From Selaginella moellendorffii (lineage: Eukaryota; Plantae; Lycopodiophyta): DNA of 64,000 nt. The translations under genes were made by a program, and so were the position numbers. The notes beneath the pieces were generated by a model that was not told where the DNA came from, did not search any database, and was given only the letters and a program-made list of their open reading frames with translations. Positions within the stretch are counted from its first letter, which is position 1, and each line of letters opens with the position of its first letter. Positions 1,731 to 64,000 of this stretch are shown here, one piece after another. The DNA lies in NCBI RefSeq assembly GCF_000143415.4, contig NW_003314297.1, positions 969,430 through 1,033,429 on the forward strand, in the 5' to 3' direction.

Positions 1731-2064
1731 TCATCCCCCCCTCTCAGAATAATGGAAGACCATCAGAGTTCTCTTGTAGACAGGCTGGGATCTGGAGGAA
1801 CATCAGGAGGGGGCATCGGCGGATCTGTAGGTGGTATTAACTGCTCCTGATCCCTTTGTATGAAGCATTTCAACTGCTACACATGCAAAATCTCTGAAGG
1901 ATCGGCCTGCTGGACGTTATGCTGAACCTTATAAACTTGTGGTCCAACTTGCCGCAACACCCGATATGGTCCTTTCCACTGTGCAAGGAGCCCTTTAGAT
2001 AAACCACGTACCGTAAGATGGGGAAAACAGACTAACACCAAATCATCAACTTTGTACTCTGCAG

Positions 2065-3864: not shown

Positions 3865-5099
3865 TGCAGGTGCACGATGATGGGAGTTGTATTGCCATTG
3901 TTGTCCCACTTGTACACGGCCTAAGTGTTCGGTAGACTCCACTTGGACAAGTGGAAGAATGCTCGTCAAATACTAATCCCATGACCTAGCATCTGTAACT
4001 CGTGGCAATTGCGAAGGTAAACCTAGCTCCATTGGTAATATTGGATCATGACCATATAGGAGTTTATATGGTGAAGCACCAATAAAACTCTGCATCCCTG
4101 TGACATATGCATACCGAAGAGACGGCAAATAACCATCCCAGTCCGAATGCTGGAAGTTCACATACTTCACAATCATCCCCTTGAATGTCCGAACGAGCCG
4201 TTCCACCAGACTGTCTGATTGTGGATGATAAGCACTCGTGAAAGTGTGGCGTATCCCCAACCGAGACGTCAAAACATGAAATGACTCAACCATAAATGTA
4301 AGACCATTATCCGAAAGAATCTGCTCTGGACAAGAATGCTGGAACACCACAAGATTGAGGAGAAAGTATCCAACAGCAGTTGCAGAGGCGCTAGCAAGAG
4401 CACCAACTTCAACCCAACGAGTCAAGTAGTCAGAAACAATAATAACATACTCATTGCCAACAGTTGACAGTGGAAAAGGTCCCATAAGATCAAACACCAC
4501 CAACTCAAACGGACGGGAAATTGCAATTGACTCTAACCGTCCTTCTGCAGCCCGAGGGGGAGTATTACGAGCTTGGCACCAAACGCAGCTATGCACATAC
4601 CGGATAATATCACGTCGCATCTCCGGCCAATAGAAAGACCTGCGCAACTTCTCGGTTATATGACGATGTCCCATATGCCCACATAAAACAGGAGAATCAT
4701 GGTAGGCATGGAGAAACCGCAGAATAAAGATAGAAGGCACCATCAGCCGTAAATGATCATAAGGATCCATCCTTACAAAATAAAGAAGGCTGTCTTCAAG
4801 GCGATATTGAGAATGTAAATACCGGAAAGGCAAGTCATTAGCAAGTGATGCAGGATTCTCAAACCCATCTCGAAGCCTTCGAATCCACGGCTCAATCTTT
4901 TGAGCTTCGCAAACTTCATCAAGAGAAGGTAGATCTTGCTCTACACTTTGTGGACACTAAACGTCAAGTACAGCAACTGCCAACGGGACAAAATCCTCGT
5001 CTAGAAAATCCACAGAGGCTGGAACAACAGGCTCATCAGAAACATGAAAAGAGAATGGAAAAGGAAAAGGAGCTCGAGAAAGAGCATCAACATCAGCCA

Positions 5100-44400: not shown

Positions 44401-45153
44401 GCGATCCTCCGTCCGGAAACGCCGTGTGCATGCTCCGAAGACCAGGACAAGCCTGCGGCGGCCATGATGGATCGAGAGTGCGAGTCGGAAGAGCTGGCGG
44501 ACAGGTCGACGGAGAAGGAGACGGTCTCTTCCTCGTACAAGTCCTACGACTGCGAGAGCGAGCAAGGCGGCAGCAACAGGTCCCAGGAGAAAGGCACCAT
44601 ACAGGTCTACGACAAGTCCCCGGTCCAGGTCCGGCCAGCTTACAACGACGTGATTCACGTCATCCGCCACAGCACGTTTCGGATCGGATCGGGAGAGCAG
44701 CAGCAGCAGCAGCAGCAGCTGTCGGATCATCCGCTCGACAGCAGCGAGTTGGAGCTGCCAGGCAAAGTTGACATTGGATGCTCGGTGATCGAGCTCCAGA
44801 GCTCGGACAAGGACGTCCTCTCGGTCTCTTCGTCGGGTACGACGGTGAGCAGCAGCCATCCATGCCCGCCAACGCCGGAGGTGTTAGTGTCACAGCAGCA
44901 AGCAAGCGAGGAGAACCGATCGAGCAGCAAAGGGATCGACGTGAAATCGTTCCGGCAGAGGGCGGAGGCGCTGGAGGGGCTGCTGGAGCTGTGCGCGCAG
45001 CTGCTGTCGCAGCACCGGCTGGACGAGCTGGCCATCGTGCTGAGGCCGTTTGGCAGCGACAAGGTCTCTCCGCGCGAGACGGCCATCTGGCTTACGCGCA
45101 GCCTCAAGGGAGTTTTGCAAGCGGAGGATCACAACATCCCAGATCATACATAG
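41473..45153 (+). CDS. NEK6: NIMA-related kinase, NEK6-like
   Basis: [61 protein letters not shown]; plant NEK C-terminal motif [11 protein letters not shown]...[10 protein letters not shown]. Confidence 0.93.
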
Positions 45154-45242
45154 CTTTTTGTGAAAAAAAAAACAGATGATACGAATGCTTTGATATTGTT
45201 TTCATTCATAACCACACTCTCGCGCCAAATGAGGCCACAGAC

Positions 45243-45790
45243 TTGTCGGAAGAGCTGAGCGTGAAGATCTTCACGGCGGACATCATCTATCACTTGTTTG
45301 ACCGGTTCATCGCGTACTTGGCGAACGCAAAGGAGGGCGAGAGAAGGGATGCGGCCGAGGAGGGCGTATTCCCGTGCATTTGCCCAACTGCGCCTTCAAC
45401 AGTTGAATGGATTCGATCATTGTCGGGGTGGGCGTTGCAAAGGTTCATGCGCTCTTTCTTTGTTCTGATTCTCATGTTTTTTCTTCCCATGACCACGTTC
45501 CGGGGAAGGAGTTCGTCGATCTTGGCAGAATATGCGTCGCTGGAAATCAATCACAAGATGGTTGATGTTGCTGGGACGAGGTAGCAATGAAGGTAAGGTT
45601 TAACCTCTCTCGGGAGTTCTTCTGTGGACGAATTGTCTCAGATCATGGGTGAGAGGATGTTTGGAAGGGCCATATCACGCGGACGTGTTGAAAGCCAACT
45701 ACAAAGTACGTGTGCATGGTGAAACTCGCTGCATCTTAATGCTCATCTGTAGACTGAGCTTACAGGCGATGAGTGGAAGCTCGTTGTCTT
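45243..45790 (+). pseudogene. eIF5B C-terminal fragment (intron-containing, disrupted)
   Basis: VKIFTADIIYHLFD..AAEEGVFPC, EINHK, DVLKANY, EWKL. Confidence 0.85.
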
Positions 45791-45940
45791 ATTCATATTT
45801 GTCCAAAAAGGCCATTCGTTTACCGTACACATTGTAAGTACTTTAGACACTTTAATGCCCTAAAAAAGGAAGTGGTAAGCAAGCGAGTTTGAGCTGAAAT
45901 ACTCCGAGTCTGCGACTTTCTCTGGTACGTTTCTCTGACT

Positions 45941-47450
45941 ATGCGCAAAATCTCCACGCCACCGCCACAGCCACCGCCACCGCCGCCTCACCGGGAGCAC
46001 GCGCCGCCCAAACCATCGCCAAAGAGGGCGCCGACAACTTCATCTCCGCCACCAGAGAGGTCCCCGCGGGCGCCAGCCAAGAGGCACAGTCATTCACCAC
46101 CAAAGCCCACAGATGGACACCACTCACCGGCAATGCCACCAGCGAGTTCTCCTGAGCATCATGGAGCTGGACATCCACCACCGAGCCCTCCGCCCATAAA
46201 GAGACACCATGGACATCGACGAGCCGGTGATGGAACAGGGCCACCACCTTCTTCTTCGCCGCCCAACAAGCCCGAGACTGTAGCCTGGCGACCAAGGAGG
46301 GCCGGGTCGCCATCGCCACCACCTTCGAGCATAACGTGGAACCCAAGGCCGCCATCGCCACCACCTTCGACCATAACAAGGCCCCTTGGCTTGGGCACCT
46401 CTCCGCCTACTGCGTCGTCAGCACCATCTTCAGCAGCAGCAGCATTCGTGGCATCACCCGGTGTGCTCGCGGCAGGCATCGTCATGCTCCTGCTCGCGCT
46501 GGTAGCCATCGTCACCGGAGTCTGGATACTCTTGAAGAGGAGAAGGAACAAGGTGCACGACGACATCTTGGTGGAGTATGGCCATCAGCCTGGCAGTGGC
46601 AACAGCAGCAGCAGCAGCAGCTAGCAGGAGCACCTCATTAATATTCTCCCGACCAAAGTATTGCCTCGACCATCTTCGCAGTTGAATGCCGGTAGGAAGA
46701 AGGCGGATGCTGACCCCCGAATTCGCGAGCTCCTGAGGCCACCAAAGCGACTGCCACCGTCTGCTCTTCCCGCTGGTGCTCGCCACAAGTCTGCATCCGG
46801 AAACGATCCACTCTTTCGTGCTGCTGATCCAGTACATGACCAGCAGGGAAGCCGGGAAAACGTCATGATGGAGGATCCTCTCGTCGTCTTTCCTGCGTAT
46901 GAAGTTGACGAGCAGCCAAGGCTGTTCTCAGCCACTCCGGAGGATGATCCACTCTTCTCGACTGGTGGCTACTCTCATCATCCAGCAGGCGAGAAAATGG
47001 CTCCAAACGAGCTCCCAGTGCGCCTATCATCTGGACACGACGGGGTTCCAGAGCAGTTTCATGGACGGGAACAAGGACGAAAGGTGGCGGATCGTTCTGG
47101 CACCGTGTTCGATCCTGGAGATGTCGCAGCACTGGCAAAGTAGCGGGCTCAGATGGAGAAACAAATGCAGAAGTTCATCATGATGGAGCCCCGCATCCGG
47201 CCTTTTTCCCACAGGTTAGTAGTCTCTGCACTTGAGCTGACAATATGGACTGATGAAGCTGAATCGATCATGTGGAGAACAGCCCCGAGATCACGAGCAA
47301 CGAGAACCTCGTCCGGAAAGTGACAGCCAATGATCCCAAGCGGGTCAAGAGTAATTTGGAGCTGGAGCCATCTGCTCCGGGGCACGCTTCTCTGACAGGT
47401 GAAAACGCCGACCAGGTACGAGCCTTTCTGTATCCTGGTGAATTCTTCCA
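45941..47450 (+). pseudogene. Proline-rich single-pass membrane protein, copy A (two in-frame TAG)
   Basis: SPPP-rich N-terminus, TM GVLAAGIVMLLLALVAIVTGVWILL followed by KRRR; TAG at 46622 and 47141 where paralogs have sense codons; 3' end approximate. Confidence 0.7.
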
Positions 47451-47859
47451 CCTCTGAGAGACAGGGAATTTGACGAGGTACGTTTCGTCGAAGTCAATTT
47501 GTATAGATGTTACTCTTTGATTGCAGGCACTGCAAGAGACAAAACCAAGTGAAAAACAAATAGAATGAAGAGCGAAAGCTCGTCATTTATCTGGCTTTCG
47601 GCTTGAGTAAGTCACAGGAAGGTCCTTTTACCTTCCTCGCTTTTCGTCAGGGTACAAAAGTTTAAGAAGAACCATCAATCATTGATATACAATTAACCAG
47701 GATGATCACATATTTATTTTTTTCAAATTTTAGAAATCTAAACTATAGATGCTTTGTTATGCTGTAGTTGGTATTGATTAGACGACACCAGAAATCCTAC
47801 GGCCTCTCAGTTTGTTTTTCTCATGTAACTCAAATCAAATTCCATGGTCGTTTTGGTCG

Positions 47860-48200
47860 CAGGCGCCCAGAATGGCCATTTTGGAGCGGTGTTTGTTATT
47901 GGCGATGTTCTCCCTCACGTGCCTCCCAGATTGTGGGAAGAGCCAAAGGGATGTACATCAACGATGATTCCACCATCACAACCGGTTTGTTCTTGACATT
48001 CGTGGCTGCGTTCAAGGATGGGATATACGCTCTCTATGACATGATCCTAGGTGGCAATAGTGCCACCTCACTGAATCCAGGTGAAATATATTTTAGCTAT
48101 CCTTGAGCTATCCTTGTCCGTTGTAACTTGTGCAGATCTCTTCAATCTTTGATGAAGATTGCGGTAATTGGAGGCTCCGGAGCTTTTTGCATCGGGATAT
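47860..48200 (+). pseudogene. Dirigent-domain gene relic
   Basis: FGAVFVIGDVL, QIVGRAKGMY and IAVIGGSGAF resemble the dirigent motifs FG.V.V.DD, VGRAQG.Y and VVGGTG.F; frameshifted. Confidence 0.65.
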
Positions 48201-48699
48201 TCGCAGATCAAGACCTACACGCTCATTCTTTTCGGCAATCTTGCACTATCAAGTGTTAACTCATCATGTCAAAATTGAACATATATCTCCAACGTCCCTC
48301 TTTTAGCTTTTACAAACTCAAAGTTCCATACAACTTCGATGCTAATATACTCCTAATACACGCTCCAGAGTTCTTATCTTCCATTTCGACCATAGACTTG
48401 GTACGATTGCACGCTGCAAGAAAAGTAGGTAAATGCTACATCGTCTCTTCTGACTGGCAGGCTCTTGACAATCTCTTGGGCAATCCAGCACGTCGATCAC
48501 GCATCAGCGACAGGACCCTCGCGAATGAAAGTGATTATCAAGGTATTATAAGTTTAAAACTATTTTATAAATACTTTTCTGTTACTAATGAAATCTTGTT
48601 AAAGTTACGCTCGTGCACAAGCTAATGAACGAATTTGCTGTTCATCAAGACAATGGACGCCAAGGTGGACGTGTCCGGGCTCGTCTCCTAAATCCGGAG

Positions 48700-50240
48700 C
48701 AGTGTTTATGTTTCTTACTTTTCCTCTTCTTCCTTGGGTGCAGTGTGCTGTCCCAGATCTTGAAAAACCGAGCTGTTGCAAGGCCACGCATGAACGTTGG
48801 AAGGCAAGCTTTCTCTGGAATCCTGCTTTTGCAGATTCGACATGAGCACGTAGAGCGCCGAGTCCCCTGGTTCCATCTCCAAGAGTTTCTCTGCGGCACG
48901 AGCTGCAGCATCGATGTTCTTGCCGCTTGCAACCGCTGATCAAGCTCTTCCACGCGAGGACATGCGGCTGGAAGGGCATCACCAGCAGCAGACCTTCGGA
49001 ATGCTGTGTACTAGGCCACCATAGATCGAAAGTAGTCGACTGCCACACGGCGATGGAGGGCGAAACCAGAAACGAGATAAGTTTCCAGGCGATTCTCCTG
49101 ACTTGCAATCACGGTGGGAAGCTCCATGCTGCCAAAAAACTCAGCTGCTTTTCGCTCATGGCCATTCTGTGCGCAGCCATGGATCATCGCGTTCCACGCC
49201 ACAATGCTCGGATCAGGCAACGTGGAGAAGATCTTCCCGGCCTGCAAGAGATTCCCCCTTTGAGCGCTCGCGGCAATCCAGCTCGCTGTTGCTCTCAGCT
49301 CCCGCGCTTGGACGAGGGCAATTTCTCTGGATCTAAGCGTGTTTCACGCGATGCTATCGTGCTGTGGCATTTGGTCGAACAAGACTCTGGCATCGATCAA
49401 GCCCCCGTGCAAAGCAATTGCCGCCACCATTGCCGTCTAAGCGACGAAATCGCACTGTGGACATCTTCATGCCTTCTTCGAGGTGGCCGTGGTTGGAGTA
49501 GGCCAAGATCATGTCAGTCCACACCACGTCGTCGTGATAGGGAGGTCGTTCGAAGAGAATGCGAGCTTCTTCGAGCTTCTTCTTCTTCTTCTGCTGTGAT
49601 CATTGTCGACCACGATGCAACGTTCTTCTGTGGCATGGCATCAAACAGCTTCTTGCAGGCTGGACGTTGCCGCTAGCATTGCGTTCCACGAGATTAAGTC
49701 GCGGTGTGGCATTTTTCTGAAAATCTTCTTGGCTTTTTCAATATGCCCAAGATGGGCATATGCAGTGACAAGAACAGTTCAACCCAGCTCGTTGGTTTCG
49801 GGGATCGTCATAAACAAAATTAGCACTTATTTAACAAGAAATGTTCTTGCATACCCAGAAACCATAACAGCCCAAGAAACTATGTTGTGTTCTAGCATTC
49901 CATCAAAGATCTGGCTCGCTTGATCCATATGCCCGTTATGGGCATATGTGTTTCAGAGTGTTTCTGAAATTTCCGTCCCATTCTGGAACCTGATCAACAA
50001 TGCTTGGCATTCCTCCACGTTTCTATGGTTTGCACGAGCCGTAATAAAAATCATCCAAGAAACAATATCCCTTTGTGGCATCTGATCAAACAGCACTTTT
50101 GCTTTCTCAAGATACCCATAAGCGCCAAGCATCAAGTTCCACGAGAATCTGTTGGGCTTGTGGATGCTGATAAACACCTGCCATTCTCGATCCGAGCGCT
50201 CGCACCTTCCATAGAGTTATGCAAGCTGTGAGGAATTGCG
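48700..50240 (-). pseudogene. Fragmented PPR gene(s)
   Basis: PNRFSWNLMLGAY, FDQMPQRDIVSW, IVAWNAMIHGCAQNGH and MPFQPHVLAWKSLISGC in shifting frames. Confidence 0.8.
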
Positions 50241-50544
50241 CGTAGCCGTCGCGGAGCGACGACGCCAGCTGCTCTAGATCTGTTCTAGAGGCTTGAATCG
50301 GTACGTCTGCGTGGGATTCCTGTCATCTTACCGGCGTTTTCCTGGAGACTGACAAGATAGAACTTTGATTTGTCAATGGCAAATAATTGTTTCCAAAGAC
50401 ATGGGACAATTTGTGCATGAGGTTGGCGCACTAAACGGTGGTCATTTCACCGACTTTATCCATAATCCGTTAACTTCGTATCGCTCCTATTTGCGCTTTC
50501 AAAGAACACGTTGTCGCCAAAATTTGCAAAACAATCCCTTACGA

Positions 50545-50706
50545 TCACAGAGCATACCAGCGCCGTCCTCGAGGGCATCGGTGGCAACTATCGGACTGGC
50601 AGCCTTGGGCAGCAGCCTTTGCGATTCCTCCCACGCCCACTCCCATGGCCAGCATCACCAACATGGCGAGAACCGAAAACAACACCAGGCAAGCCTTGTT
50701 CTCCAT
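50545..50706 (-). CDS. Divergent, shortened paralog of the secreted Cys/Trp peptide (53 aa; may be a pseudogene)
   Basis: MENKACLVLFSVLAMLVMLAMGVGVGGIAKAAAQGCQSDSCHRCPRGRRWYAL*; TATA (CTATAAATA) about 65 nt upstream. Confidence 0.6.
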   Translation of the reverse strand: MENKACLVLFSVLAMLVMLAMGVGVGGIAKAAAQGCQSDSCHRCPRGRRWYAL

Positions 50707-51502
50707 GAAACTAAGAGTTCAACGAACTCTAGTATATTCGAGGGAAGTGATTTGATCTGTGAGGCCGCTCGTATTTATAGCTCGAGGCAGCATACAATGC
50801 TAGAGTGGCGCCTCTTTTGAAAGTTAGTCGAGGAAGTCGTTTCCTGGGACATAGAACAACACACGAAATGAAGCTGTGAATCCAGATGAGTAAAGACAAC
50901 ATTTGAGTTTTTTCACAGTTTATATAATATATGAACACACGCCATTGCTATAGATTTCACTACCACTGAAAATAACAAAAATCCAAATAAATATCTTTAG
51001 AAGAGAAGTGTCATTTTCGATTGTGCTTTATATACATGGGTGTATATAATTGCTAGACTTTGTCTTGGGAAAGAGATCAGATTCGTTGAAAAACTTGTCT
51101 CCACTACTGCGTCATATTTCCATCTGGTTGCTTTTCCAAGTTCCACGTCGAGACTAAGATGGCAGAGTGTCCACAACTTTCATTGACAAAAATATATATG
51201 ATTTTAGTTAATATTATATAAAATAATTTGAGCCCAGATAGATTGACTTGGCTTTCTTTTCAAGTTTCTTGACTGAATATATGACGTTCTTATATATTAA
51301 AAGTCCATACATTCCGAACGTTACACTGCAACAAAAACTCTCCAGAAAATGCATCATATTTATCATTGACAGTCTCAGGGCACCAAACACGTGAATAGAC
51401 TCCAAAACATCTTCGTTCACTCTTATTCTATATATATATATCACTTTTCATGATTCGAGATTCGCTCCCGTGGTTCTTCGAGGCCCGAGCTTTGGCAATT
51501 CT

Positions 51503-51652
51503 TCAGCGGATGCAGCGGCCGCCATTCCAGCGCCACCCTCGATGGCAGCTGTTGTCATACCCGTACCAATCGCATTGCACGCAGCGAAATCCATTCCAGT
51601 ACCAAGCGCTGCGCCATCCCCTTGGTGATGCCCCTGACCTCCACTCCCACCG
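51503..51652 (-). pseudogene. 5'-truncated three-repeat paralog of the Cys/Trp peptide
   Basis: GVEVRGITKGMAQR / WYWNGFRCVQCDWYGYDNSCHRGWRWNGGRCIR*; no ATG or signal peptide, frameshift. Confidence 0.7.
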
Positions 51653-51974
51653 CTAGGTGTGCCTGGGCCTGGTTTGATGCTCCAATCGAGTGTTATTGCT
51701 TGCCGATCATTGGAGCAATTGATTGGAAGTCGAGGGATTTGGAGAAGAGAGGAGAAGGACCAAGGACAGATTCAGACATTTTATATTAAGGCTTGGACAA
51801 TTTATATTTTATTCCTGGAACTCATGCAATACTATGCAACATTGCACGATACAGAAAACACGTCATCAGTGTCTTTATTCTTGTTTCCAGACCCTTGGCA
51901 CTGCAGAACGATAAAATCAAAGGCAATTACGATGCTGATTCTTAACTTGGGCTTACCCCGTGAAACGAGAGGTT

Positions 51975-52172
51975 TCAGTTGCGCGAGCAGCGATTGTTGC
52001 GCCAGCTCCAACCCCTCTGGCAACGGTGGCAACTGTTGTCATACCAATACCACCCCGACTGGCAGCGCTGGGCAGCAGCCTTTGCAATTCCTCCCACGTC
52101 CACGCCCATGGCCAGCATCATCACAAATATGGCAAGCGCCAAAAACAACACGAAGAAAGCCTTGTTCTCCAT
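51975..52172 (-). CDS. Small secreted Cys/Trp-rich peptide, copy 1
   Basis: Signal-like N-terminus followed by QRCQSGWYWYDNSCHRCQRGWSWRNNRCSRN; TATA upstream; intact in three copies. Confidence 0.85.
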   Translation of the reverse strand: MENKAFFVLFLALAIFVMMLAMGVDVGGIAKAAAQRCQSGWYWYDNSCHRCQRGWSWRNNRCSRN

Positions 52173-52835
52173 GATTTGCTGCTAGAGAAGTAAGCTTGTT
52201 ATATTAGAGAGAAGTGGTTTGATTTGGGCTCATATTTATAGCTCGAGCCAGCACACAATGCTAGAGAGTTGTTGTGGGAGTCCTTATCTATTTTGGTTCC
52301 GTGTTTGAAAATTTCTTCTCTTTTTTATAATGCTCATTTCTTAGTCCTTATCTATTTTGGTTCCGTGTTTGAGAATTTCTTTTCTTTTTTATAATGCTCT
52401 CCAACCCTTCAATTGAGGATCATTAAGTTCCACAAAATCGCATGTTGCTAAAACTTTACAAATTCATACTACAAGCTTGCAGATAGAGAAAGCCATAGAG
52501 TTTAGCTCGAAAAGATGAAAGCAAGTAGTGTTTGATAGCAACACGTGTACCATATCATCAGTTAAATATGGTACGGACATTTCAGATCATGTTAGATCGA
52601 CGGCTTTGATTTAATTAATACGTTTTACACAATGGGCGGCTCAGATTGTATACAAATAAACGGTCTAGATTGTACATGAATGAGATGATCTTGTATTCTT
52701 CTATTTGTACGAAAAGGATATCTGTACCATGTACACGTTAATGCCCTAAAAAACGGAAAGTAAGCAAGAGCGCGGTAAGCAAGCGAGCTTGAGCTGAAAT
52801 ACTGCGACTTTTTCTGGTAAGCTTGATCTCTGACT

Positions 52836-53865
52836 ATGGCGCACAAACTCTCCACGCCACCACCCCCGCCGCCTCACCGGGAGCACGTGAGGAGGACGCC
52901 GCCGCCCAAACCATCGCCAAAGAGGGTGCCGACAACTTCATCTCCGCCACCAAAGAGGTCTCCACCGGCGCCAGCCAAGAGGCACAGTCATTCACCAACA
53001 AAGCCCACACTCACCAGCAAAGCCACCACTGAGTTCTCCTGAGCATCATGGAGCTGGACATCCACTGCTGAGCTCTCCCGAGTATCATGGAGCACCACCG
53101 AGGTCTCCTGAGCATCATGGAGCTGGACATCCACCACCGAGCTCTCCGCCCACCAAGGAACATCCAGCAGCAGAGCCAAAGAGGCACCATGGTGATGGAG
53201 CTGCTACAGGGCCGCCACCTTCTTCTTCGCCGCCCAACAAGGCCGGCACTGTAACCTGGCGACCAAGGAGGGCCGGGCCGCCATCGCCACCACCTTCGAG
53301 CATAACGTGGCAACCAAGGCCCCTTGGCTTGGGCACCGCTCCCCCTACTGCGCCGTCAGCACCATCTTCAGCAGCAGCTGCATTCGTGGCATCACCTGGT
53401 GTGCTCGGGAGGCATCGTTATGCTCCTGCTCGCACTGGTAGCCATCGTCACTGGAGTCTGGATACACTTGAAGCGGAGAAGGAACAAGGTGCACGGCGAC
53501 ATCATCCTGGTGGCCATCAGCCTGGCGGTGGCAACAGCGGCAGCAGCAGCAGCCAGGAGCACCTCATTACCAAAGTGGAGCCTCGACCATCATCGCAGTT
53601 GAATGCCGGCAGGAAGAAGGCGGCTACTGGAGGCCCGCTGGTGCTCGCCACAAGTCTGCATCCGGAAACGATCCACTCTTTCGTGCTGCTGATCCAGTGC
53701 ATGGCCAGCAGGGAAGCCGGGGAAACGTCATGGAGGATCCTCTCGTCGTCTTTCCTGCGTATGAAGTTGACGAGCAGCCAAGGCTGTCCTCAGCCACTCC
53801 GGAGGATGATCCACTCTTCTCGACTGGTGGCTACTCTCATCACCCAGCAGGCGAGAGAATGGCTG
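52836..53865 (+). pseudogene. Proline-rich membrane protein, copy B (frameshifted, 3'-truncated)
   Basis: Collinear with copy A; several indels; fused to an eIF5B fragment at about 53870. Confidence 0.8.
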
Positions 53866-53871
53866 ACAACG

Positions 53872-54090
53872 AGACAAGGTAGCAATGAAGGTAAGGTTTA
53901 AGCTCTCTCGGGAGTTCTTCTGTGGACGAACTGTCTCAGTTCATGGGTGAGGATGTTTGGAAGGGCCATATCATGCGGACATCGATCGATGTGTTGAAAG
54001 CCAACTACAGAGTCCGTGTGCATGGTGGAACTCGCTGCATCTTAATCCTCATCTATAGACTGAGCTTACAGGCGATGAGTGGAAGCTCGT
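53872..54090 (+). pseudogene. Second eIF5B fragment
   Basis: Near-copy of 45578-45785; RTSIDVLKANYR. Confidence 0.8.
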
Positions 54091-54802
54091 CGTTAAGCTC
54101 AAGAATATACTATTCTTTTCGCGAATCTTATTCATAGACCCAATTCTACCCTTCGCTGTGAGCAATTTCGGTTGCATCTATAAATGTAACATAGTCTGCA
54201 AATATTTATAACTTTAACAAGATTTAATATCAGAAAATAATTATTAATTAATAAATTTTAAACGGATAATACCTCCCTGCTGGATGGCTGAAGCATAGAC
54301 CACTTTCTGGTCCCGTCACTGATCACTCTGCGTGATCAATCTGTTTGGGTGCTGGATTGCCCAAGAGATTGTCAACAGCCTCCCAGTGAGAAGAGACGAC
54401 GTAGCATTTACCACTTTTCTTGCAGCGTATACACTCCTAATATATACGCTCCAGAGTTCTTGTCTTCTATTTCGACCACTGACTTGGTTCTATCGAGCTT
54501 TGAGTTTAAGCTAGAACAGGGACTTCAGAGATATAGATACATTTTCGGCTTGTTCAATTTTGACATGATCGTTAACACTAAATAGTGCGGCATCAATAGT
54601 TTAGATTTCATAAAAAACAGAATAAAAATTAACAAAATAAATTTGTGATCATCCTGGCTATTGTATACCGATGATTGATGGCTCCTCCTAAACTTTTGTA
54701 CCCCGATGAAAAGTGAGGAAGGCAACAGGACCTTCCTGTGACTTACTCAAGCCCATAGAAGGGACTGAAGAGAAAGCCAGATAAATGACGAGCTTTCGCT
54801 CT

Positions 54803-56205
54803 TCATTCTACTAACCTGTGGGAAAAAGGCCGGATGCGGGGCTCCATCATGATGAACTTCTGCATTTGTTTCTCCATCTCAGCCCGCTCCTTTGCCAGTG
54901 CTGCGACATCTCCAGGATCGAACACGGTGCCAGAACGATCCGCCACCTTTCGTCCTTGTTCCCGTCCATGAAACTGCTCTGGAACCCCGTCGTGTCCAGA
55001 TGATAGGCGCACTGGGAGCTCGTTTGGAGCCATTTTCTCGCCTGCTGGATGATGAGAGTAGCCACCAGTCGAGAAGAGTGGATCATCCTCCGGAGTGGCT
55101 GAGAAAAGCCTTGGCTGCTCGTCAACTTCATGCGCAGGAAAGACGACGAGAGGATCCTCCATCGTGACGGTTTCCCGGCTTCCCTGCTGGCCATGTACTG
55201 GATCAGCATCACGAAAGAGTGGATCGTTCCCGGATGCAGACTTGTGGCGAGCACCAGCGGGAAGAGCAGACGGTGGCAGCCGCCTTGGTGGCCTCAGGAG
55301 CTCGCGAATTCGGGGGTCAGCAGCCGCCTTCTTCCTGCCAGCATTCAACTGCGATGATGGTCGAGGCTCCACTTTGGTAATGAGGTGCTCCCGCTGGTCG
55401 CTGCTGCTGCCGCTGTTGCCACCGCTAGGTTGATGGCCATACTCCACCAGGATGTCGTCGTGGTGGATGTCGCCGTGCACCTTGTTTCTTCTCCTCTTCA
55501 AGAGTATCCAGACTCCAGTGACGATGGCTACCAGTGCGAGCAGGAGCATAACGATGCCTGCCGCGAGCACACCAGGTGATGCCACGAATGCTGCTGTTGC
55601 TGCTGCTGCTGCTGAAGATGGTGCTGACGACGCCGTAGGCGGAGAGGAGGTGTCGAAGCCAAGGGGCCTTGGTTGCCACGTTATGGTCGATGGTGGTGGC
55701 GATGGCGGCCTTGGGTTCCACGTTATGGTCGAAGGTGGTGGCGATGGCCTTGGGTTCCACGTTATGCTCGAAGGTGGTGGCGATGACACCCCGGCCCTCC
55801 TTGGTCGCCAGGTTACAGTGTCGGCCTTGTTGGGCGGCGAAGAAGAAGGTGGCGGCCCTGTAGCAGCTCCATCACCAGCTCGTCGATGTCCAGGGTGCCT
55901 CTTTGGCTCTGCTGCTGGATGTTCCTTTGTGGGCGGAGAGCTCGGTGGTGGATGTCCAGCTCCATGATGCTCGGGAGAGCTCGGCGGTGGATGTCCAGCT
56001 CCATGATGCTCAGGAGAACTCGGTGGTGGCTTTGCTGGTGAGTGATGTCCATCTGTGGGCTTTGGTGGTTAATGACTGTGCCTCTTGGCTGGCACCGGTG
56101 GAGACCTCTTTGGGGGCGGAGCGCCCTCTTTGGCGATGGTTTGGGCGGCGGCATCCTCCTCGCGTGCTCCCGGTGATGCGGCGGGGGCGGTGGCGTGCGA
56201 GCCAT
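54803..56205 (-). pseudogene. Proline-rich membrane protein, copy C
   Basis: Long open 3' frame (TM and cytosolic tail), but a 13-nt deletion and TAA near the 5' end and a 3' deletion relative to copy A. Confidence 0.7.
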
Positions 56206-56756
56206 AGTCAGAGATCAAGCTTACCACAGAAAGTCGCAGTATTTCAGCTCAAGCTCGCTTGCTTGCTTCTCCTTTTTTAGGGCATTAAAGTGTCTGAAAG
56301 TACTTCTGATGTGTACGGTAAACGAATGGTAGAGATATCCTTTTCGTATAAATAGAAGAATAGTATATTCTTGAAAGCTAGTCACAATCTAGACCGTGCA
56401 ATTAAAACATTCTGGACCGTTCCTTTATATACAATCTGAGCCGTCCACTGTAATATTTAAATCAAAGCCGTCGATCTAAAATGATCTGAACCGTCCCATA
56501 TTTAACTGATGATATGGCACACACGTGGCCAATGCAGGGATTCTTCGGAACTTGTAACGTGGAATGGCGATTTTGTGGAACTTCATGGAGAGATTTTATG
56601 TGGATCCCAGCATTATAAAAAAGAGAAGAAATTCTCAAACACGGAACTAAAATAGATAAGGACTCCGTCCCATCTAGCATTGTGTGCTGGCTCGAGCTAT
56701 AAATATGAGCCCAAATCAAACCACTTCTAACAAGCTTACTTCTCTAGCAGCAAATC

Positions 56757-56954
56757 ATGGAGAACAAGGCTTTCTTCGTGTTGTTTTTGGCGCTCGCCAT
56801 ATTTGTCATGATGCTGGCCATGGGCGTGGACGTGGGAGGACTCGCAAAGGCTGCTGCCCAGCGCTGCCAGTCGGGGTGGTATTGGTATGACAACGGTTGC
56901 CACCGTTGCCAGAGGGGTTGGAGCTGGCGCAACAATCGCTGCTCGCGCAACTGA
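56757..56954 (+). CDS. Small secreted Cys/Trp-rich peptide, copy 2
   Basis: MENKAFFVLFLALAIFVMMLAMGVDVGGLAKAAAQRCQSGWYWYDNGCHRCQRGWSWRNNRCSRN; CTATAAATA at 56697. Confidence 0.85.
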   Translation: MENKAFFVLFLALAIFVMMLAMGVDVGGLAKAAAQRCQSGWYWYDNGCHRCQRGWSWRNNRCSRN

Positions 56955-57278
56955 AACCTCTCGTTTCATGGGGTAAGCCCAAGTTAAGAATCAGCATCGT
57001 AATTGCCTTTGATTTTATCGTTCTGCAGTGCCAAGGGTCTGGAAACAAGAATAAAGACAATGATAACGTGTTTTCTGTATCGTGCGATGTTGCATAGTAT
57101 TGCATGAGTTCCAGCAATAAAATATAAATTGTCCAAGCCTTGATATAAAATGTCTGAATCTGTTCTTGGTCCTTCTCCTCTCTTCTCCAAATCCCACGAC
57201 TTCCAATCGATTGCTCCAATGATCGGCAAGCAATAAGACTCGATTGGAGCATCAAAACCAGGCCCAGGCACACCTAGC

Positions 57279-57427
57279 GGTGGGAGTGGAGGTCGGCGGC
57301 ATCACCAAGGCGATGGCGCAGCGCTTGGTCCTGGAATGGATTTCGCTGCGTGCAATGCAATTGGTACGGGTATGACAACAGCTGCCATCGAGGGTGGCGC
57401 TGGAATGGCAGCCGCTGCATCTGCTGA
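57279..57427 (+). pseudogene. 5'-truncated three-repeat peptide paralog (mirror of 51503-51652)
   Basis: VGVEVGGITKAMAQR / WSWNGFRCVQCNWYGYDNSCHRGWRWNGSRCIC*. Confidence 0.7.
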
Positions 57428-58247
57428 AGAATTGCCAAAGTTTGCGAGCCTCGGGCCTCAGAGAACCACGGGAGCGAATCTCGAATCATGAAAAGTTGGG
57501 TTGACAGCCTGGATGAGATATATGTAGAATAAGAGTGAACGAAGATGTTTTGGAGTCTATTCGTCTTTGATGCCCTGGGTCTGAGACTGTCAATGATAAA
57601 TATGGTGCGTTTTCTGGAGAGTTGTTGTTGCAGTGTAACGTTCGCAATGTATGGACTTTTAATATATAGAGACGTGATATACTCAGTCAAAAAGCTTGAA
57701 CCAGAAAGAAAGCCAAGTCAATCTATCTGGGCTCAAAATTATATTATAATATTAACTAAAATCATATATATTTTTGTCAATGAAAGGTTTGGACAGTCTG
57801 CCATCTTAGTCTCGACGTGGAACTTGGAAAAGCAACCAGATGGAATATGAAGCAGTAGTGGAGACAAGTTTTTCAACGAATCTGATCTCTTTCCCAAGAC
57901 AAAGTCTAGCAATTACATACATCAACCACGTATATAAAACACAATCGAAAATGAAATGACACACACTTCTCTTCCAGAGATCGTCAAGATCCAACTATTT
58001 ATTAGATTTTTGTTCTTTTCAGTGGCAGTGAAATCTATAGCAATGGTGAAAAAACTACATTTTGTGTGTTGTTCTATGTCCCAGCATTATAGAAAAGAAA
58101 AGGAATTGACAAATACGAACGACTTCCTAGAATAACTTTCAAAGGACAAACTTCCCAAGAGGCACCACTCTGGCTATAAATACGAGCGGCCTCACAGATC
58201 AAATCACTTCTCTCGAATATACTAGAGTTCGTTGAACTCTTAGTTTC

Positions 58248-58415
58248 ATGGAGAACAAGGCTTGCCTGGTGTTGTTTTCGGTTCTCGCCATGTTGCTGAT
58301 GCTGGCCATGGGAGTGGACGTCAAAAGCACTGCAGCTAGCTCCTCTAAGTTTCCTCTCGGGGATTGTTTTGCAAATTTTGGCTACAACGTGTTCTTTGAA
58401 AGCGCCTTTAAATAG
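58248..58415 (+). CDS. Peptide paralog retaining the signal sequence with a replaced C-terminus (55 aa; may be a pseudogene)
   Basis: MENKACLVLFSVLAMLLMLAMGVDVKSTAASSSKFPLGDCFANFGYNVFFESAFK*; CTATAAATA at 58174. Confidence 0.5.
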   Translation: MENKACLVLFSVLAMLLMLAMGVDVKSTAASSSKFPLGDCFANFGYNVFFESAFK

Positions 58416-59189
58416 GAGCGATATGAAGAAACAGTTAATAAAGTCGGTGAAATGACCACCGTTTAGTGCGCACTTCCTTGCGACAAATCAAAGCTCTATC
58501 TTTAGTCTCCAGGTAAGATGGCAGGAATCACTACTTACCGATTCAAGCCTCTAGAACGGGCTGTGGACGATCTAGAGCAGCGCACAGATCTAATAACAGA
58601 AAATTATTATAAATTAATTAATTTTAAATGGATAGTACCTCCCAATGGCTGAGCTGATCCCTACTGGTGCGTGATCGATCGGGTGTGCTGGATTGCCCAA
58701 GAGATTGTCAAGAGCCTACCAGTGAGAAGAGATGATGTAGCATTTACCACTTTTCTTGTAGCATATATAATCCTACTATATATGCTCCAGAGTTCTTGTC
58801 TTCCATTTTGACCACAGACTAGGTTCTATCGAACTTTGAGTTTGTAAAAGCTAGAAGAGGGACTTTGGAGATAGATACATTTTCGGCTCGTTCAATTTTG
58901 ACATGATCAATTACCACTCAATAGTGCAAGATTGCCAAAAATGGTGGAATGAGCGTGTAGGTCGAATACCCCAATGCAATCTGTAAGCTCAAGTGCCTCC
59001 AATTACCGCAATCTTCACCAAAGATTGAAGAGATATGGAGCAGCTACAACAGAAAAGGATGATTTAAGGATAGCTAGAATATATTATCATAGCCAAATAT
59101 ACTGATCAAGAGACATGCCACACCTAGATCAATGAGGTGGCACTATTGCAACCTAAGATCATGTCATATATAGAGCATATATACTCAAT

Positions 59190-61400
59190 AAAAATGCTGT
59201 CTTACCCACACATGCTCATTGTTGCCTCTTATTAAACACCATCTTATATCACTCTCTCTCCACTTACTTTGGTAGTGACTTTGCATTTATTTGTGACTTT
59301 CTGGGGATGATTCAAGGCATCAAAACACCTGCCTGTTTGCAGCTCCCACCTGGATGTGGCCAGACTTAAATTTAATTGACCTAAAAAAGTTTATGGTTTT
59401 TCCATGGTGGAAACATATTAGTTTCCAGAAGAAAACAAATAATTTATCTTGATATTGATTATGTAGTTGATAAGTTGACAGTGAATACTTTCTATGCAAA
59501 TTATTAATATGTTGTGTAATTAGAAAATTATCCTAACAAAAAAGTTCATCACAATTTATATATGCTCATTATAAATTTAAATTGATGTGAAATCCTGATA
59601 GATTATATGAATTCCTCCAGTTGGATCAAGTTGACCATGACAAGAAATCCCATTTGTATCATAATTAGGCTATTTATAAAACATTTTGACCAAAAAATTG
59701 CAGACCCACTTGTTAAAACTTTGATCTGGTTTACTCAAGTGTAATGGATGTTTCATGAGTATTTTACTTTCTATATTCACACCAATGCTTGTGTCAAAAT
59801 GTTTGTAATTATATTTTATTATTATATAAAATACCTGATTAATGATAAAAAGCTTGTGTTTTTTTCTGGTTTTAAATCTCTATGATCATAATTTTTGTTA
59901 GAAAATTGCCAAAAATCCATCTTATCACCCCTTCTGTCACCATCTAGAAACTTATTCAAATATTTATGTAACATATACATAATAGGAGCTATAATTTCAT
60001 TTTATTTAGACAAATCTCACTAAATTATGTGCACACAAAAATTCCTCTTCATGGAATTTTTACACCTCATAATGGATCTTAAATAGCTTTCTTCAAAAAT
60101 AATGCACAAAGTGTATGTATTTGGAAGAGTGTATGGATTTAGAAGAACACAAATCCTAAGAAAGTATTTAGATGATTGAGCTAAATATTGTTTTACTATT
60201 GAGATTTAAATAACTTGGCAATTGCAAAAGATAGTAAAATTTGCAAATAATAATTTATTGAGTCTTGATGCAACTTTTGGAACTAATCAGGTAAAGTTTT
60301 CATTTATTTTAAAGTGAATAATCTTTAAAAGTTTATAATTTTTATAGAACACCATATTTGTTTTTAATTATCATAGAAATGGTATCTCAATTATATAGGG
60401 TTTAATTTCTAGTGAGAAAGAACAACATATGAAGAATTGGATGATAGTTTTTAAAAATTGAGTTTTAAAACACATGTCAGATTGAAAATCACATACAATA
60501 ATGATTGATGATTAAATATATTATAATATATTTAATTTTTATATAGAGTTATATTTGATTATCAAATTTTATTGTGCATTTAACACATAAGGAGGAACTA
60601 GCTTAAATATATTATTTGTAAGGTGGAATCATGGGATATTAGGATGTATATATAGAAATATTTTAAAGATATTATGTATCATTTAATTCATATAGTTTTT
60701 TATGATGATACTATTAAATAAGCTAAGATTAAGAAACTTATCAAACATTTCAAAATTAATTTTCAAAATGAAAAAACATTTATCAAGTATTTTTAAGATG
60801 AATAGAATGATAAAGTTGGTAAGTGAATCAATATTTTAACTTTTATAATTTTTTTTGTATTTGATAGATATGTAGGTTGTTGCTACTCAAAATTTCCCTC
60901 ATGTTAATAAGAAGATAAATAGTTCATTAAGGTATTTCATACCAATATAAAATTTATACTCTCGTCCAAAAAAATAAAAACATTTGAAGTATAGATTAAG
61001 CAATTCATCAATTTACTACTAAAGTTTATGTGAAGTATTGATTTTACTACTTATTGCAAAGATCATAGTTTTATTTGAAATTATGAATACCAAAAATTAA
61101 TCAATTGTGTGATTGTTAAAGCAAAAAATATTAATAACTCTCAAGTAAGATTTGATAAATACAATGTTCACAAATCTTATGTATAATCATTTCAAATCCA
61201 ACTATATGGTATCTCATTGTCACAGTAATTAAGTTTTTTCAACTTAGTGTAATTTTTTATGGTCAACTATAAGATAATTTTGCAAACATTAAGTCACATT
61301 TATTATGTTGAAGCAAAGAGAGCAAAAATTTACTAGATTAAAATTAATTATAAAACTTAATATTAAAACTTGGGCAAAATGGATTCTGGGGAAAATGAAC
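59190..61400 (+). mobile_element. Highly decayed AT-rich MULE/SWIM transposase relic
   Basis: LSLDATFGTN (about 60258-60287), MIDD (60501), C-x-x-H (about 60575) and CKH (61281) in MULE order; interrupts a second dirigent relic (about 58980-59185 and 61405-61460). No TIR found. Confidence 0.6.
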
Positions 61401-61799
61401 TTGCAAGGGAGAACATCATTGATGACAAACACCACTCCAAAATGCCATTCTGGGGCTTGTGACCAATATCTATGCCATAAAATGCATAGATAAAATGCCA
61501 TTCTGGGGCCATTCTGGGGCCAATCTATTAGTGCAATAATACAGCATAAAATAGCTTCAAAACAGAATAGAAATTAACAAAATAATTATGTGATCATCCT
61601 AATTGTATATCTATGAAAAGCATTTAAGGTAAGTAAGGGACTGAAGAGAAAGCCAGATTTCGCTCTCAATTCTATTTGTTTTTCACTTGTTCTTATGTTT
61701 TGTCTCTCGCAGTGCCTGCAATCAAAGAGTAGCATCTATACAAATTGACTTCGAAGAAACGTACTTCATCAAGTTCCCTGTCTCTCTCAAAGGTGGAAG

Positions 61800-63020
61800 A
61801 ATTCACCTGTCAGAGAAGCGTGCCCCGGAGCAGATGGCCCCAGCTCCAAATTACTCTTGCTTGGGATCATTAGCTGTCAACTTCCAGACGAGGTTCTCGT
61901 CTCTCGTGATCTTGGGGCTGTTCTCCACATCGCGCTTCCTGGCTCAAGTGCAGAGACTACTAACCTGTGGGAGAAAGGCCGGATGCAGGAGTCCATCATG
62001 ATGAACTTCTGCATTTGTTTCTCCATCTCAGCCCGCTTCTTTGCCAGTGCTGCGACATCTCCAGGATCGAACACGGTGCCAGAACCTTTCGTCCTTGTTC
62101 CCGTCCATGAAACTGCTCTGGAACCCCGTCGCGTCAAGATGATAGCAGCACTGGGAGCTCGTTTGCAGCCATTTTCTCGCCTGCTGGATGGTGAGAGTAG
62201 CCACCAGTCGAGAAGAGTGGATCATCCTCTGGAGTGGCTGAGAACAGCCTTGGCTGCTCGTCAACTTCATTTGCAGGAAAGGCGACGAGAGGATCCTCCA
62301 TCATGACGTTTCCCCGGTTTCCCTTCTGGCCATGCACTGGATCAGCAGCACGAAAGAGTGGATCCACTGCGAGCTTGTTTCCGAATGCAGACTTGTGGCG
62401 AGCACCACCGGGAAGAGCAGACGGTGGCAGTCGCCTTGGTGGCCTCAGGACCTCGCGAATTCGGGGATCAGCAGCCGCCTTCTTCCTACCGGCATTCAAC
62501 TGCAAAGATGGTCGAGGCAATACTTTGGTCAGGGGAATATTAATGAGGTGCTCCTGCTGGCTGTTGCTGCTGCCGCTGTTGCCACTGCCAGGCTGATGGC
62601 CATACTCCACGAAGATGTCGTCGTGCACCTTGTTCCTTCTCCGCTTCAAGAGTATCCAGACTCCAGTGACGATGGCTACCAGTGCGAGCAGGAGCATAAC
62701 GATGCCTGCCACGAGCACACCAGGTGATGCCACGAATGCAGCTGCTGCTGAAGATGGTGCTGACGGCGCAGTAGGCGGAGAGGTGCCCAAGCCAAGGGGC
62801 CTTGTTATGGTCGAAGGTGGTGGCGATGGCGGCCCGGCCCTCCTTGGTCCCAGGTTACAGTGTCGGCCTTGTTGGGCGGCGAAGAAGAAGGTGGCGGCCT
62901 TGTAGCAGCTCCATCATCAGCTCGTCGATGTCCATGGTGCCTCTTTGGCTCAGCTGCTGGATGTTCCTTGGTGGGCGGAGAGCTCGGGGGTGGATGTCCA
63001 GCTCCATGATGCTCAGGAGA
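61800..63020 (-). pseudogene. Proline-rich membrane protein, copy D (5' deleted, internal TGA)
   Basis: ORF 62134-62790 with TM and KRRR, followed by GTVFDPGDVAALAKKRAEMEKQM in 61877-62137. Confidence 0.75.
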
Positions 63021-63767
63021 ACTTGGGCTTTCTGTGCCTCTTGGCTAGTGCCGGTGGATATACGAAGAAGTCGCAGTATTTCAACTCAAGCTTGCTTGCT
63101 TACCATTGTGCTCAAGTTTGCTTGCTTACTTCCCCTTTTTTAGGGCATTAAAGTGTCTGAAATCCCTTTTCGTACAAATAGAAGAATAGTATATTCTTAA
63201 AATCTATAAGATCTGAGAACTTGAAATCTGGGCCGTCTATTGGACAGTCATTCATGTACAATCTAGACCGTGCATTTAAAACACTCTGGACCGTTTATTT
63301 ATATACAATCTGAGCCGCCCACGGTGTAAAATCTGGGCTGTCGTATTAATTAAATCAAAGCCGTCGATCTAACATGATCTGAACCGTCCCATATTTAACT
63401 GATGATATTGCAATGCCATGTGTTGCTTTCAAACACTACTTAGGATTGTTTTCATCTTTTCGAGCTAAACTCCATGGCTTTCTCTATCTGCAAGCTTGTA
63501 GTACGAACTTGTAAAGTTTTAGCAACGTGGAATGGCGATTTTGTGGAACTTAATTCCATTTGAAGGGTTGGAGAGATTTATGAGTATTATAGAAAGAGAA
63601 GAAATTTTCAAACACAGAACCAAAATAGATAACGACTAAGCAATACCGTCCCACAACAACTCTCTAGCATTGTGTGCTGGCTCGAGCTATAAATACAAGC
63701 CCCTCCCACCTCACAAATCAAACCACTTCTCTCTAATATAACAAGCTTACTTCTCTAGCAGCAAATC

Positions 63768-63965
63768 ATGGAGAACAAGGCTTTCTTCGTGTTGTTTTTG
63801 GCGCTCGCCATATTTGTCATGATGCTGGCCATGGGCGTGGACGTGGGAGGACTCGCAAAGGCTGCTGCCCAGCGCTGCCAGTCGGGGTGGTATTGGTATG
63901 ACAACGGTTGCCACCGTTGCCAGAGGGGTTGGAGCTGGCGCAACAATCGCTGCTCGCGCAACTGA
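63768..63965 (+). CDS. Small secreted Cys/Trp-rich peptide, copy 3
   Basis: Protein identical to copy 2; CTATAAATA at 63687. Confidence 0.85.
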   Translation: MENKAFFVLFLALAIFVMMLAMGVDVGGLAKAAAQRCQSGWYWYDNGCHRCQRGWSWRNNRCSRN

Positions 63966-64000
63966 AACCTCTCGTTTCATGGGGTAAGCCCAAGTTAAGA

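Follow-up and report, generated by a model that had tools for sequence, protein, structure and literature searches.

The window analysed here is a 64,000-nt stretch of the Selaginella moellendorffii genome (contig NW_003314297.1, positions 969,430 to 1,033,429 of the forward strand), and its last quarter carries a family of short genes for predicted secreted peptides built from units rich in cysteine and tryptophan. A preliminary description of this DNA had proposed three intact genes of 65 amino acids (aa), two of them identical in protein and one differing at two residues; all three open reading frames (ORFs) were found and are called genes A, B and C here (Table 1). The coding sequences (CDS) of A and B are separated by five nucleotide changes, three synonymous and two nonsynonymous. 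Six-frame translation of the window gives eight occurrences of the motif shared by the units, C..GW.W....C, compared with 0 in 100 shuffles. Positions 44511–64000 of the window are 100% identical to scaffold GL377601.1 of the same species (assembly GCA_000143415.2), and none of the peptide ORFs is annotated in the GenBank gene set of this stretch, where only three proline-rich membrane-protein genes and one kinase are called. A more distant paralogue with four units lies in a second cluster on another scaffold (locus L009).

All ATG-bearing members of the family in the window, namely the three intact genes and two truncated variants, share a TATA-box block, GCTATAAATA, as the preliminary description had proposed for their TATA boxes. 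This string is present exactly five times in the 64 kb (0.04 expected), each time approximately 60–70 nt upstream of an ATG-bearing ORF and on the correct strand, and nowhere else in the window. In gene B, the TATA box reads at 56698–56705, transcription probably starts near 56730, which would leave a 5′ untranslated region (UTR) of approximately 25 nt, and the stop codon is at 56952–56954. The genes had been called intronless, which holds for the coding part; the 3′ UTR of gene B, however, may contain a GT..AG intron (56973–57028), with the size that is typical of introns in S. moellendorffii. This candidate is not present in the 3′ UTR of the four-unit paralogue. Antisense ORFs of 68–155 aa were considered as genes and rejected, because GCTATAAATA, the poly(A) signals and the conservation of the scaffold all fit the sense strand.

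The precursor opens with MENK and continues with 18 uncharged hydrophobic residues (A5–M22), then GVDVGGLAKAAA and Q35. By eye, it has the regions of a signal peptide, with the charge of K4, the hydrophobic A5–M22 and the small-residue AKA/AAA motifs; the long h-region is also compatible with a signal anchor. The GVDVGGLAKAAA segment is conserved even among distant paralogues, and the small-residue A-x-A motifs (AKA, and AAA before Q35) are conserved in all copies. In the four-unit paralogue, an h-region of 14 residues precedes A-S-A/Q at the aligned position. Because of this short h-region and A-S-A/Q junction, we consider that the signal is probably cleaved after AAA34, before Q35, which supports the earlier proposal of an N-terminal Gln that might form pyroglutamate.

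The predicted mature part (31 aa) has the cysteine spacing C-x10-C-x2-C-x10-C, with 4 Cys, 4 Trp and 6 Arg, and a computed isoelectric point of 9.7, net charge of about +4.8 and reduced mass of 3964 Da. Its two units begin C37-Q-S-G-W-Y-W...C48 and C51-Q-R-G-W-S-W...C62. AlphaFold2 modelled the precursor with a helix at residues 3–21 and strands at 41–44, 47–50, 55–58 and 61–64, so that the mature part, without a helix, forms two hairpins that turn at D45-N46 and N59-N60. The predicted local distance difference test score (pLDDT), obtained with shallow alignments, was 82–84 for the mature part within the precursor and 85 when this part was modelled on its own. Two Trp β-hairpins, as anticipated in the preliminary description, are therefore what the model predicts. 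By analogy with single-disulfide modules, the disulfides are probably formed within units (C37–C48 and C51–C62).

Each intact gene belongs to a larger module consisting of the two-unit gene, a three-unit relic approximately 300 nt downstream, a truncated variant approximately 1 kb further on, and, on the other side of the two-unit gene, a proline-rich membrane-protein gene arranged head-to-head with it. Modules A and B are inverted duplicates of each other (51011–52334 versus 57954–56609). Module C, a direct copy of B, extends beyond the window end, where its relic and truncated variant are also present (read via locus L008), and the head-to-head module recurs in the neighbouring and allelic loci L005 (twice), L006 and L007. 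The four divergent relatives reported earlier were recovered as a pair of truncated variants with an ATG and a pair of three-unit relics with shifted frames; a form with the same deletion as the 53-aa variant is found in another module (L006:2621-2770). Both relics have three recognizable but degenerate units, no ATG, a lost hydrophobic core and a shifted frame. In the relic downstream of B, TTG stands in place of the ATG, the hydrophobic core has been lost by deletion, the frame shifts past the ...AMAQR segment, and unit 3 is without its first Cys. Because the relics of A and B carry the same defects and match at 96% without gaps, we conclude that their decay preceded the inverted duplication. 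The copies are local tandem or inverted segmental duplicates and are not dispersed, and we therefore rejected the possibility that they travel as transposon passengers. One further copy, L006:1043-1240(+), is open over 65 codons and has the changes D45V, R50C and C62W, the last of which removes a scaffold Cys; it is probably a copy early in decay.

Table 1. Features of the peptide family, its neighbours and its relatives. Positions are those of the window unless a locus (L) is given.
Feature	Position	Strand	Remarks
Intact gene A	51975-52172	-	65-aa ORF; L29I and G47S relative to B
Intact gene B	56757-56954	+	65-aa ORF; two 14-aa Cys/Trp units in the 31-aa mature part
Intact gene C	63768-63965	+	65-aa ORF; protein identical to B
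TATA-box block GCTATAAATA, gene B	56696-56705	+	Exact string match; conserved in the copy alignment
GCTATAAATA, gene A	52233-52242	-
GCTATAAATA, gene C	63686-63695	+
GCTATAAATA, 53-aa variant	50772-50781	-
GCTATAAATA, 55-aa variant	58173-58182	+
Candidate 3′ UTR intron, gene B	56973-57028	+	56 nt, GTAAG...CAG, 19 nt past the stop; read by eye
Candidate poly(A) signals AATAAA, gene B	57050-57055, 57116-57121	+	Read from sequence
Gene-conversion tract	56728-57059	+	332 nt identical to 63739-64070 of copy C; about transcription start to first AATAAA
Truncated ATG-bearing variant, 53 aa	50545-50706	-	Signal and pro segments intact; unit 1 without GWYWYDN; 3 Cys; early ORF end
Truncated ATG-bearing variant, 55 aa	58248-58415	+	Homology in signal part only; ~94-nt deletion took the Cys/Trp units
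Three-unit relic downstream of A	~51490-51675	-	Defects the same as in the B relic; 96% ungapped match
Three-unit relic downstream of B	57244-57440	+	Pseudogene
Proline-rich single-pass membrane-protein gene beside B	54803-56205	-	SELMODRAFT_417965 family; co-duplicated, head-to-head
Proline-rich membrane-protein gene copy beside A	52836-53901	+
Proline-rich membrane-protein gene copy beside C	62134-63007	-
Fourth proline-rich membrane-protein gene copy	~45850-48000	+
Four-unit paralogue	L009:9078-9347	+	Intact, unannotated; second cluster, scaffold GL377595.1
Decayed multi-unit copies (two or three)	L009: ~10001-10260, 10915-11000, 11736-12010		Frame-shifted
Hairpin proteins of virus-like contigs	L001:2624-2875, L002:3761-4018, L004:5014-5268, L010:3001-3051		GWYWYDNxCH hairpins

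Genes B and C share a tract without a single difference (0/332), whereas the DNA on both sides of it is 5–10% diverged with many indels. The two copies differ by approximately 10% and many indels directly upstream of the tract, and by 17 substitutions and 12 gap openings in the approximately 340 nt that follow it. With a background divergence of 5–6%, the chance of 332 identical bases is approximately 1e-9 to 4e-8. Outside the tract, C has states like those of A (a 9-nt insertion before 56728, and positions 57060, 57164, 57196, 57295, 57297 and 57330), whereas within the tract C equals B. The identity inside diverged flanks, together with the states that C shares with A outside the tract, demonstrates a short gene-conversion event between B and C. 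Gene conversion had been one of two explanations offered earlier for the intact ORFs, and the tract shows it directly for this pair. We also observed that the tract nearly coincides with the predicted transcription unit, reaching from approximately 30 nt past the TATA box to the first AATAAA with the candidate intron included, which makes the locus a clean example of a short conversion tract matching a transcription unit.

The other explanation offered was selection, with the reasoning that the ORFs stay intact while neighbouring genes have decayed. That reasoning is weak, as the relics decayed before the duplication and copies that are 97–100% identical would stay open by chance. Comparison of A with B is uninformative: 5 of 198 CDS positions differ (2.5%), compared with 2–3% in the immediate flanks (Fisher p = 1), and the pair alone is without power. 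We therefore compared A, B and C with five copies from L005–L007, a set of eight CDS with 15 variable sites, and left out the probably decaying L006:1043-1240 to obtain seven intact copies. Among these seven, there were 6 nonsynonymous and 6 synonymous changes where approximately 4:1 was expected (dN/dS ~0.25, binomial p = 0.019). Variable sites made up 2/96 positions in the mature codons; the corresponding figures were 10/102 for the codons of the signal and pro parts and 18/175 for the DNA of the 3′ UTR, the candidate intron and the stop-proximal stretch. The mature codons were thus approximately five-fold less variable than adjacent transcribed non-coding DNA (Fisher p = 0.014), and they also differed from all other aligned DNA (Fisher p = 0.005). 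Relative to the four-unit paralogue, dS was 0.7–0.9 and dN/dS approximately 0.45–0.55, with Cys, Gly and Trp retained; these positions are conserved in frame across two- or four-unit paralogues that are only ~50% identical. Together, these comparisons speak modestly but consistently for purifying selection on the mature peptide. Selection as proposed in the preliminary description thus keeps modest support, which comes from mature codons that vary little and from dN/dS, whereas the intactness of the ORFs is a weak argument for it.

The same data bear on the possibility that the ORFs are non-functional remnants of young duplicated and converted DNA, open only by recency. The equal divergence of A and B inside and outside the CDS is what remnants would show, the identity of B and C is due to conversion, and only three of the window's seven family loci are intact, the other four having decayed. 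Furthermore, for none of ten proteins of the family, half of them encoded in the window and half at paralogous loci, was there an exact copy among approximately 15 billion predicted proteins, a set that includes proteins from assemblies of public sequencing runs. Remnants would not, however, be expected to have mature codons less variable than non-coding DNA and too few nonsynonymous changes, nor to have kept the frame and the Cys/Trp scaffold between paralogues at a dS of ~0.7–0.9, nor a conserved GCTATAAATA promoter block. On balance we consider the remnant explanation unlikely.

Searches against known families agreed with the preliminary description that the cysteine spacing does not fit established plant peptides. 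For the precursor and the mature part, Pfam gave no family match; the best cysteine-repeat model was DUF4215, with 13.8 bits against a cut-off of 27, and TNFR_c6, Furin-like, GCC2_GCC3 and similar models gave none even at E ≤ 10. Comparison with solved structures by sequence, using either a single sequence or a 14-row family profile, yielded no significant match, and the sub-threshold matches in the PDB were to the N-terminal hairpin of C-type lectins (E = 0.13–2.1) and to R-spondin furin-like repeats. With the predicted fold, Foldseek returned no match at E < 1, and its weak list (E > 1) contained the cysteine-rich (CR) region of the insulin receptor, R-spondin, the cysteine-rich domain (CRD) of EphA2, TNFR and EGF modules. 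An exhaustive structural aligner gave Z 2.2 for the mGluR CRD (root-mean-square deviation (rmsd) 1.9 Å over 31 residues) and Z 2.1 for the TNFR-like UL144 (rmsd 2.1 Å over 31 residues), scores that cannot become significant for so small a domain. The ESM Atlas held no match by features and none by shape above a template-modelling (TM) score of 0.5. Searches of full-text literature gave no description of such peptides for Selaginella or other plants. By these searches, the family is undescribed, unannotated and Selaginella-specific.

In the predicted fold, each unit looks like a minimal single-disulfide β-finger of the TNFR A1 or furin-like kind. In TNFR module nomenclature, such a module has approximately 12–17 residues bounded by two Cys and a C-x2-G-x-aromatic start, and both peptide units begin in this way. 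The A1 modules of TNFR, the C1 modules in the furin-like or cysteine-rich regions of EGFR and the insulin receptor, and the FU repeats of R-spondin are short one-disulfide hairpins, as predicted for the peptide units, with C-x2-G-x-aromatic near the start; they stack in tandem with 2-residue linkers, and the R-spondin FU repeats align in sequence with the peptide unit for unit. All weak structural neighbours of the model belong to this kind. The Selaginella units differ in being minimal (12 residues from Cys to Cys), in their W-x-W pair and in having no two-disulfide modules, and they would form a free 31-aa peptide instead of a part of a large receptor ectodomain; the match is not significant. 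The earlier claim of an unrecognized scaffold therefore stands as far as significant family matches go, with the qualification of this non-significant resemblance. In sequence, by single-sequence and profile search alike, the best look-alike of a single unit is the N-terminal hairpin of long-form C-type lectins (C-P-x-x-W-x(6)-C; convulxin alpha, E = 2.1; CLEC12A, E = 0.13), in which one disulfide also closes a Trp-containing hairpin. There, however, the hairpin is a single accessory without repeat, whereas the Selaginella peptides end after the hairpins and have no C-type lectin domain (CTLD) core.

Plant cysteine-rich peptide families resemble the Selaginella peptides in being small, cationic and, as predicted, signal-bearing and disulfide-rich, and in forming tandemly duplicated birth-and-death clusters. 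The Ib-AMPs are likewise 4-Cys peptides rich in Trp and Arg. Neither Pfam nor the searches of 5.8 billion and 1.84 billion proteins gave a match to, or a homologue named as, defensin, thionin, hevein, snakin/GASA, RALF, EPF or LTP. In contrast to the plant families with 6–12 Cys, the peptide has C-x10-C-x2-C-x10-C and a predicted all-β double hairpin. The alpha-hairpinins (C-x3-C...C-x3-C) have a helix-loop-helix, whereas here the spacing is x10/x2/x10 and four β-strands are predicted. A precursor of a peptide made on the ribosome and modified after translation (RiPP) of the BURP/lyciumin type was also considered and rejected, as Pfam found no BURP domain and there is no core-peptide motif.

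In the same two protein sets, the only significant matches were a pair of Selaginella entries with faulty gene models and a small number of virus-like proteins from metagenomes, and a word-index protein search with the 65-aa precursor gave no match. A phmmer search of the 1.84 billion representatives returned four matches: XP_024531936.1, an 83-aa metagenome protein (P0003) and two low-complexity repeat proteins. XP_024531936.1, named 'putative pectinesterase 11' in S. moellendorffii, has the family signal, pro segment and first unit in its first ~52 residues. Because its pectinesterase part was not found within 10 kb of the matching loci in L009, the model is probably chimeric. We did not take this entry as support for a cell-wall-binding role, as only its ~52 N-terminal residues match. 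In SELMODRAFT_416301, a family member in L009 has been modelled in the wrong frame. The intact four-unit paralogue at this locus confirms that the number of repeats is modular, as had been suggested from the three-unit relics.

P0003 and two similar proteins, P0005 and P0006, are encoded on densely packed virus-like contigs. All three have a C-x11-C-x2-C-x11-C two-hairpin domain followed by a transmembrane helix, and P0003 and P0006 match 11 of the 12 residues of unit 1, GWYWYDNGCHRC, the exception being the residue before the closing Cys. A further contig from IMG/VR (L010) also has GWYWYDNACH hairpin repeats. The match between the plant peptide and P0003 has E = 2.6e-4 (phmmer; a W/C-rich match), which is the sole independent value, as the profile search was circular with P0003 in the query. 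The plant and virus-like proteins are thus alike in the two-hairpin C...C-x2-C...C layout and in a near-identical unit 1, whereas the virus-like proteins differ in having no N-terminal signal, a C-terminal membrane anchor and a dissimilar second unit. Among 185,579 prokaryotic species genomes, 43 pattern matches included no relative; tblastn against phage records gave no match, and PHROGs held no informative family for virus-like contig L004. The likeness may reflect either convergence on a very stable hairpin or shared ancestry.

We consider it slightly more probable than its negation (approximately 0.55) that these are real, lineage-specific genes for secreted, two-hairpin cationic defence peptides that are duplicated, converted and under purifying selection. 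Following this logic, the TATA-box promoter would drive expression of the 65-aa precursor, whose cleavable signal peptide would be cut after AAA34 to release a cationic peptide of approximately 4 kDa starting with Gln. The mature peptide would fold into two stacked β-hairpins, each closed by its own disulfide, with four Trp and two Tyr at alternating strand positions and six Arg around them. This aromatic and cationic face may bind microbial envelopes or polysaccharides, and extracellular binding in defence is the most likely role. Local segmental duplication of the whole module (intact gene, relic, truncated variant and membrane-protein gene) generated the copies, and gene conversion, probably together with purifying selection on the mature part, keeps them alike.

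Several observations weigh against this interpretation. The selection signal comes from few substitutions among copies that exchange sequence by conversion, and many fast-evolving defence peptides show the reverse of what is seen here, a conserved mature part beside a freely varying signal part. Birth and death are ongoing in the family, as indicated by the lost Cys in L006:1043-1240 and by two decayed relatives per module. The fold resemblances fall well short of significance (Z 2.2; Foldseek E > 1), and the ~15 billion predicted proteins include no exact copy. Finally, the hydrophobic segment of 18–20 residues could be an uncleaved signal anchor. It is long enough to span a membrane, and the product might then stay membrane-anchored and display its double hairpin at the cell surface, as in P0003, P0005 and P0006, which join a double hairpin to a C-terminal transmembrane segment. 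We regard this as very unlikely, given the typical short h-region (~14 residues) before A-S-A/Q in the four-unit paralogue and the A-x-A motifs conserved in all copies.

The head-to-head neighbour raises the further possibility that the peptide is an endogenous signalling ligand, perhaps acting via the proline-rich membrane protein. The pairing, with starts approximately 550–800 nt apart, is present in at least seven modules (three in the window, two in L005, one in L006 and one in L007), and conservation of the mature peptide among copies would be expected for a ligand with a fixed partner. Segmental co-duplication, however, explains the pairing without a functional link. No Pfam domain matches the membrane protein, in which no ligand-binding or kinase domain is recognizable. 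Of its three copies next to peptide genes in the window, two are frame-shifted or truncated although the adjoining peptide genes are intact, and the L009 peptide cluster has no proline-rich neighbour among its called genes. Relatives of the membrane protein were found in Selaginella only (SELMODRAFT_417965-417975, and the allelic 407769-407780), and one that RefSeq names PERK9 has no kinase domain on record. A signalling role of this kind therefore seems improbable to us compared with the defence peptide favoured above. More speculative still, and a long shot in our estimation, is that the peptide and the kinase-less membrane protein are a lycophyte-specific, co-amplified ligand–partner pair, or that the hairpin unit was exchanged horizontally with uncultivated viruses.

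Plant annotation pipelines miss many small peptide genes, and this Selaginella family is missing or mis-modelled in GenBank and RefSeq. If expressed, it would add a lycophyte-specific class of secreted Cys-rich peptides with a modular 14-residue Trp-hairpin scaffold. This scaffold is easily synthesized and can be tested for antimicrobial activity or polysaccharide binding, and it may serve as a minimal stable β-hairpin framework.

The remainder of the window contains ordinary plant genes, including those for a retrotransposon integrase, an apyrase, a PIP5K fragment, a GT47 exostosin and PPR proteins. The retrotransposon integrase ORFs (1877–4833, minus strand; Integrase_H2C2, rve, p58_C) adjoin a G+C-rich, internally repetitive stretch (2200–2750), which has weak tblastn matches to a low-complexity repeat protein.

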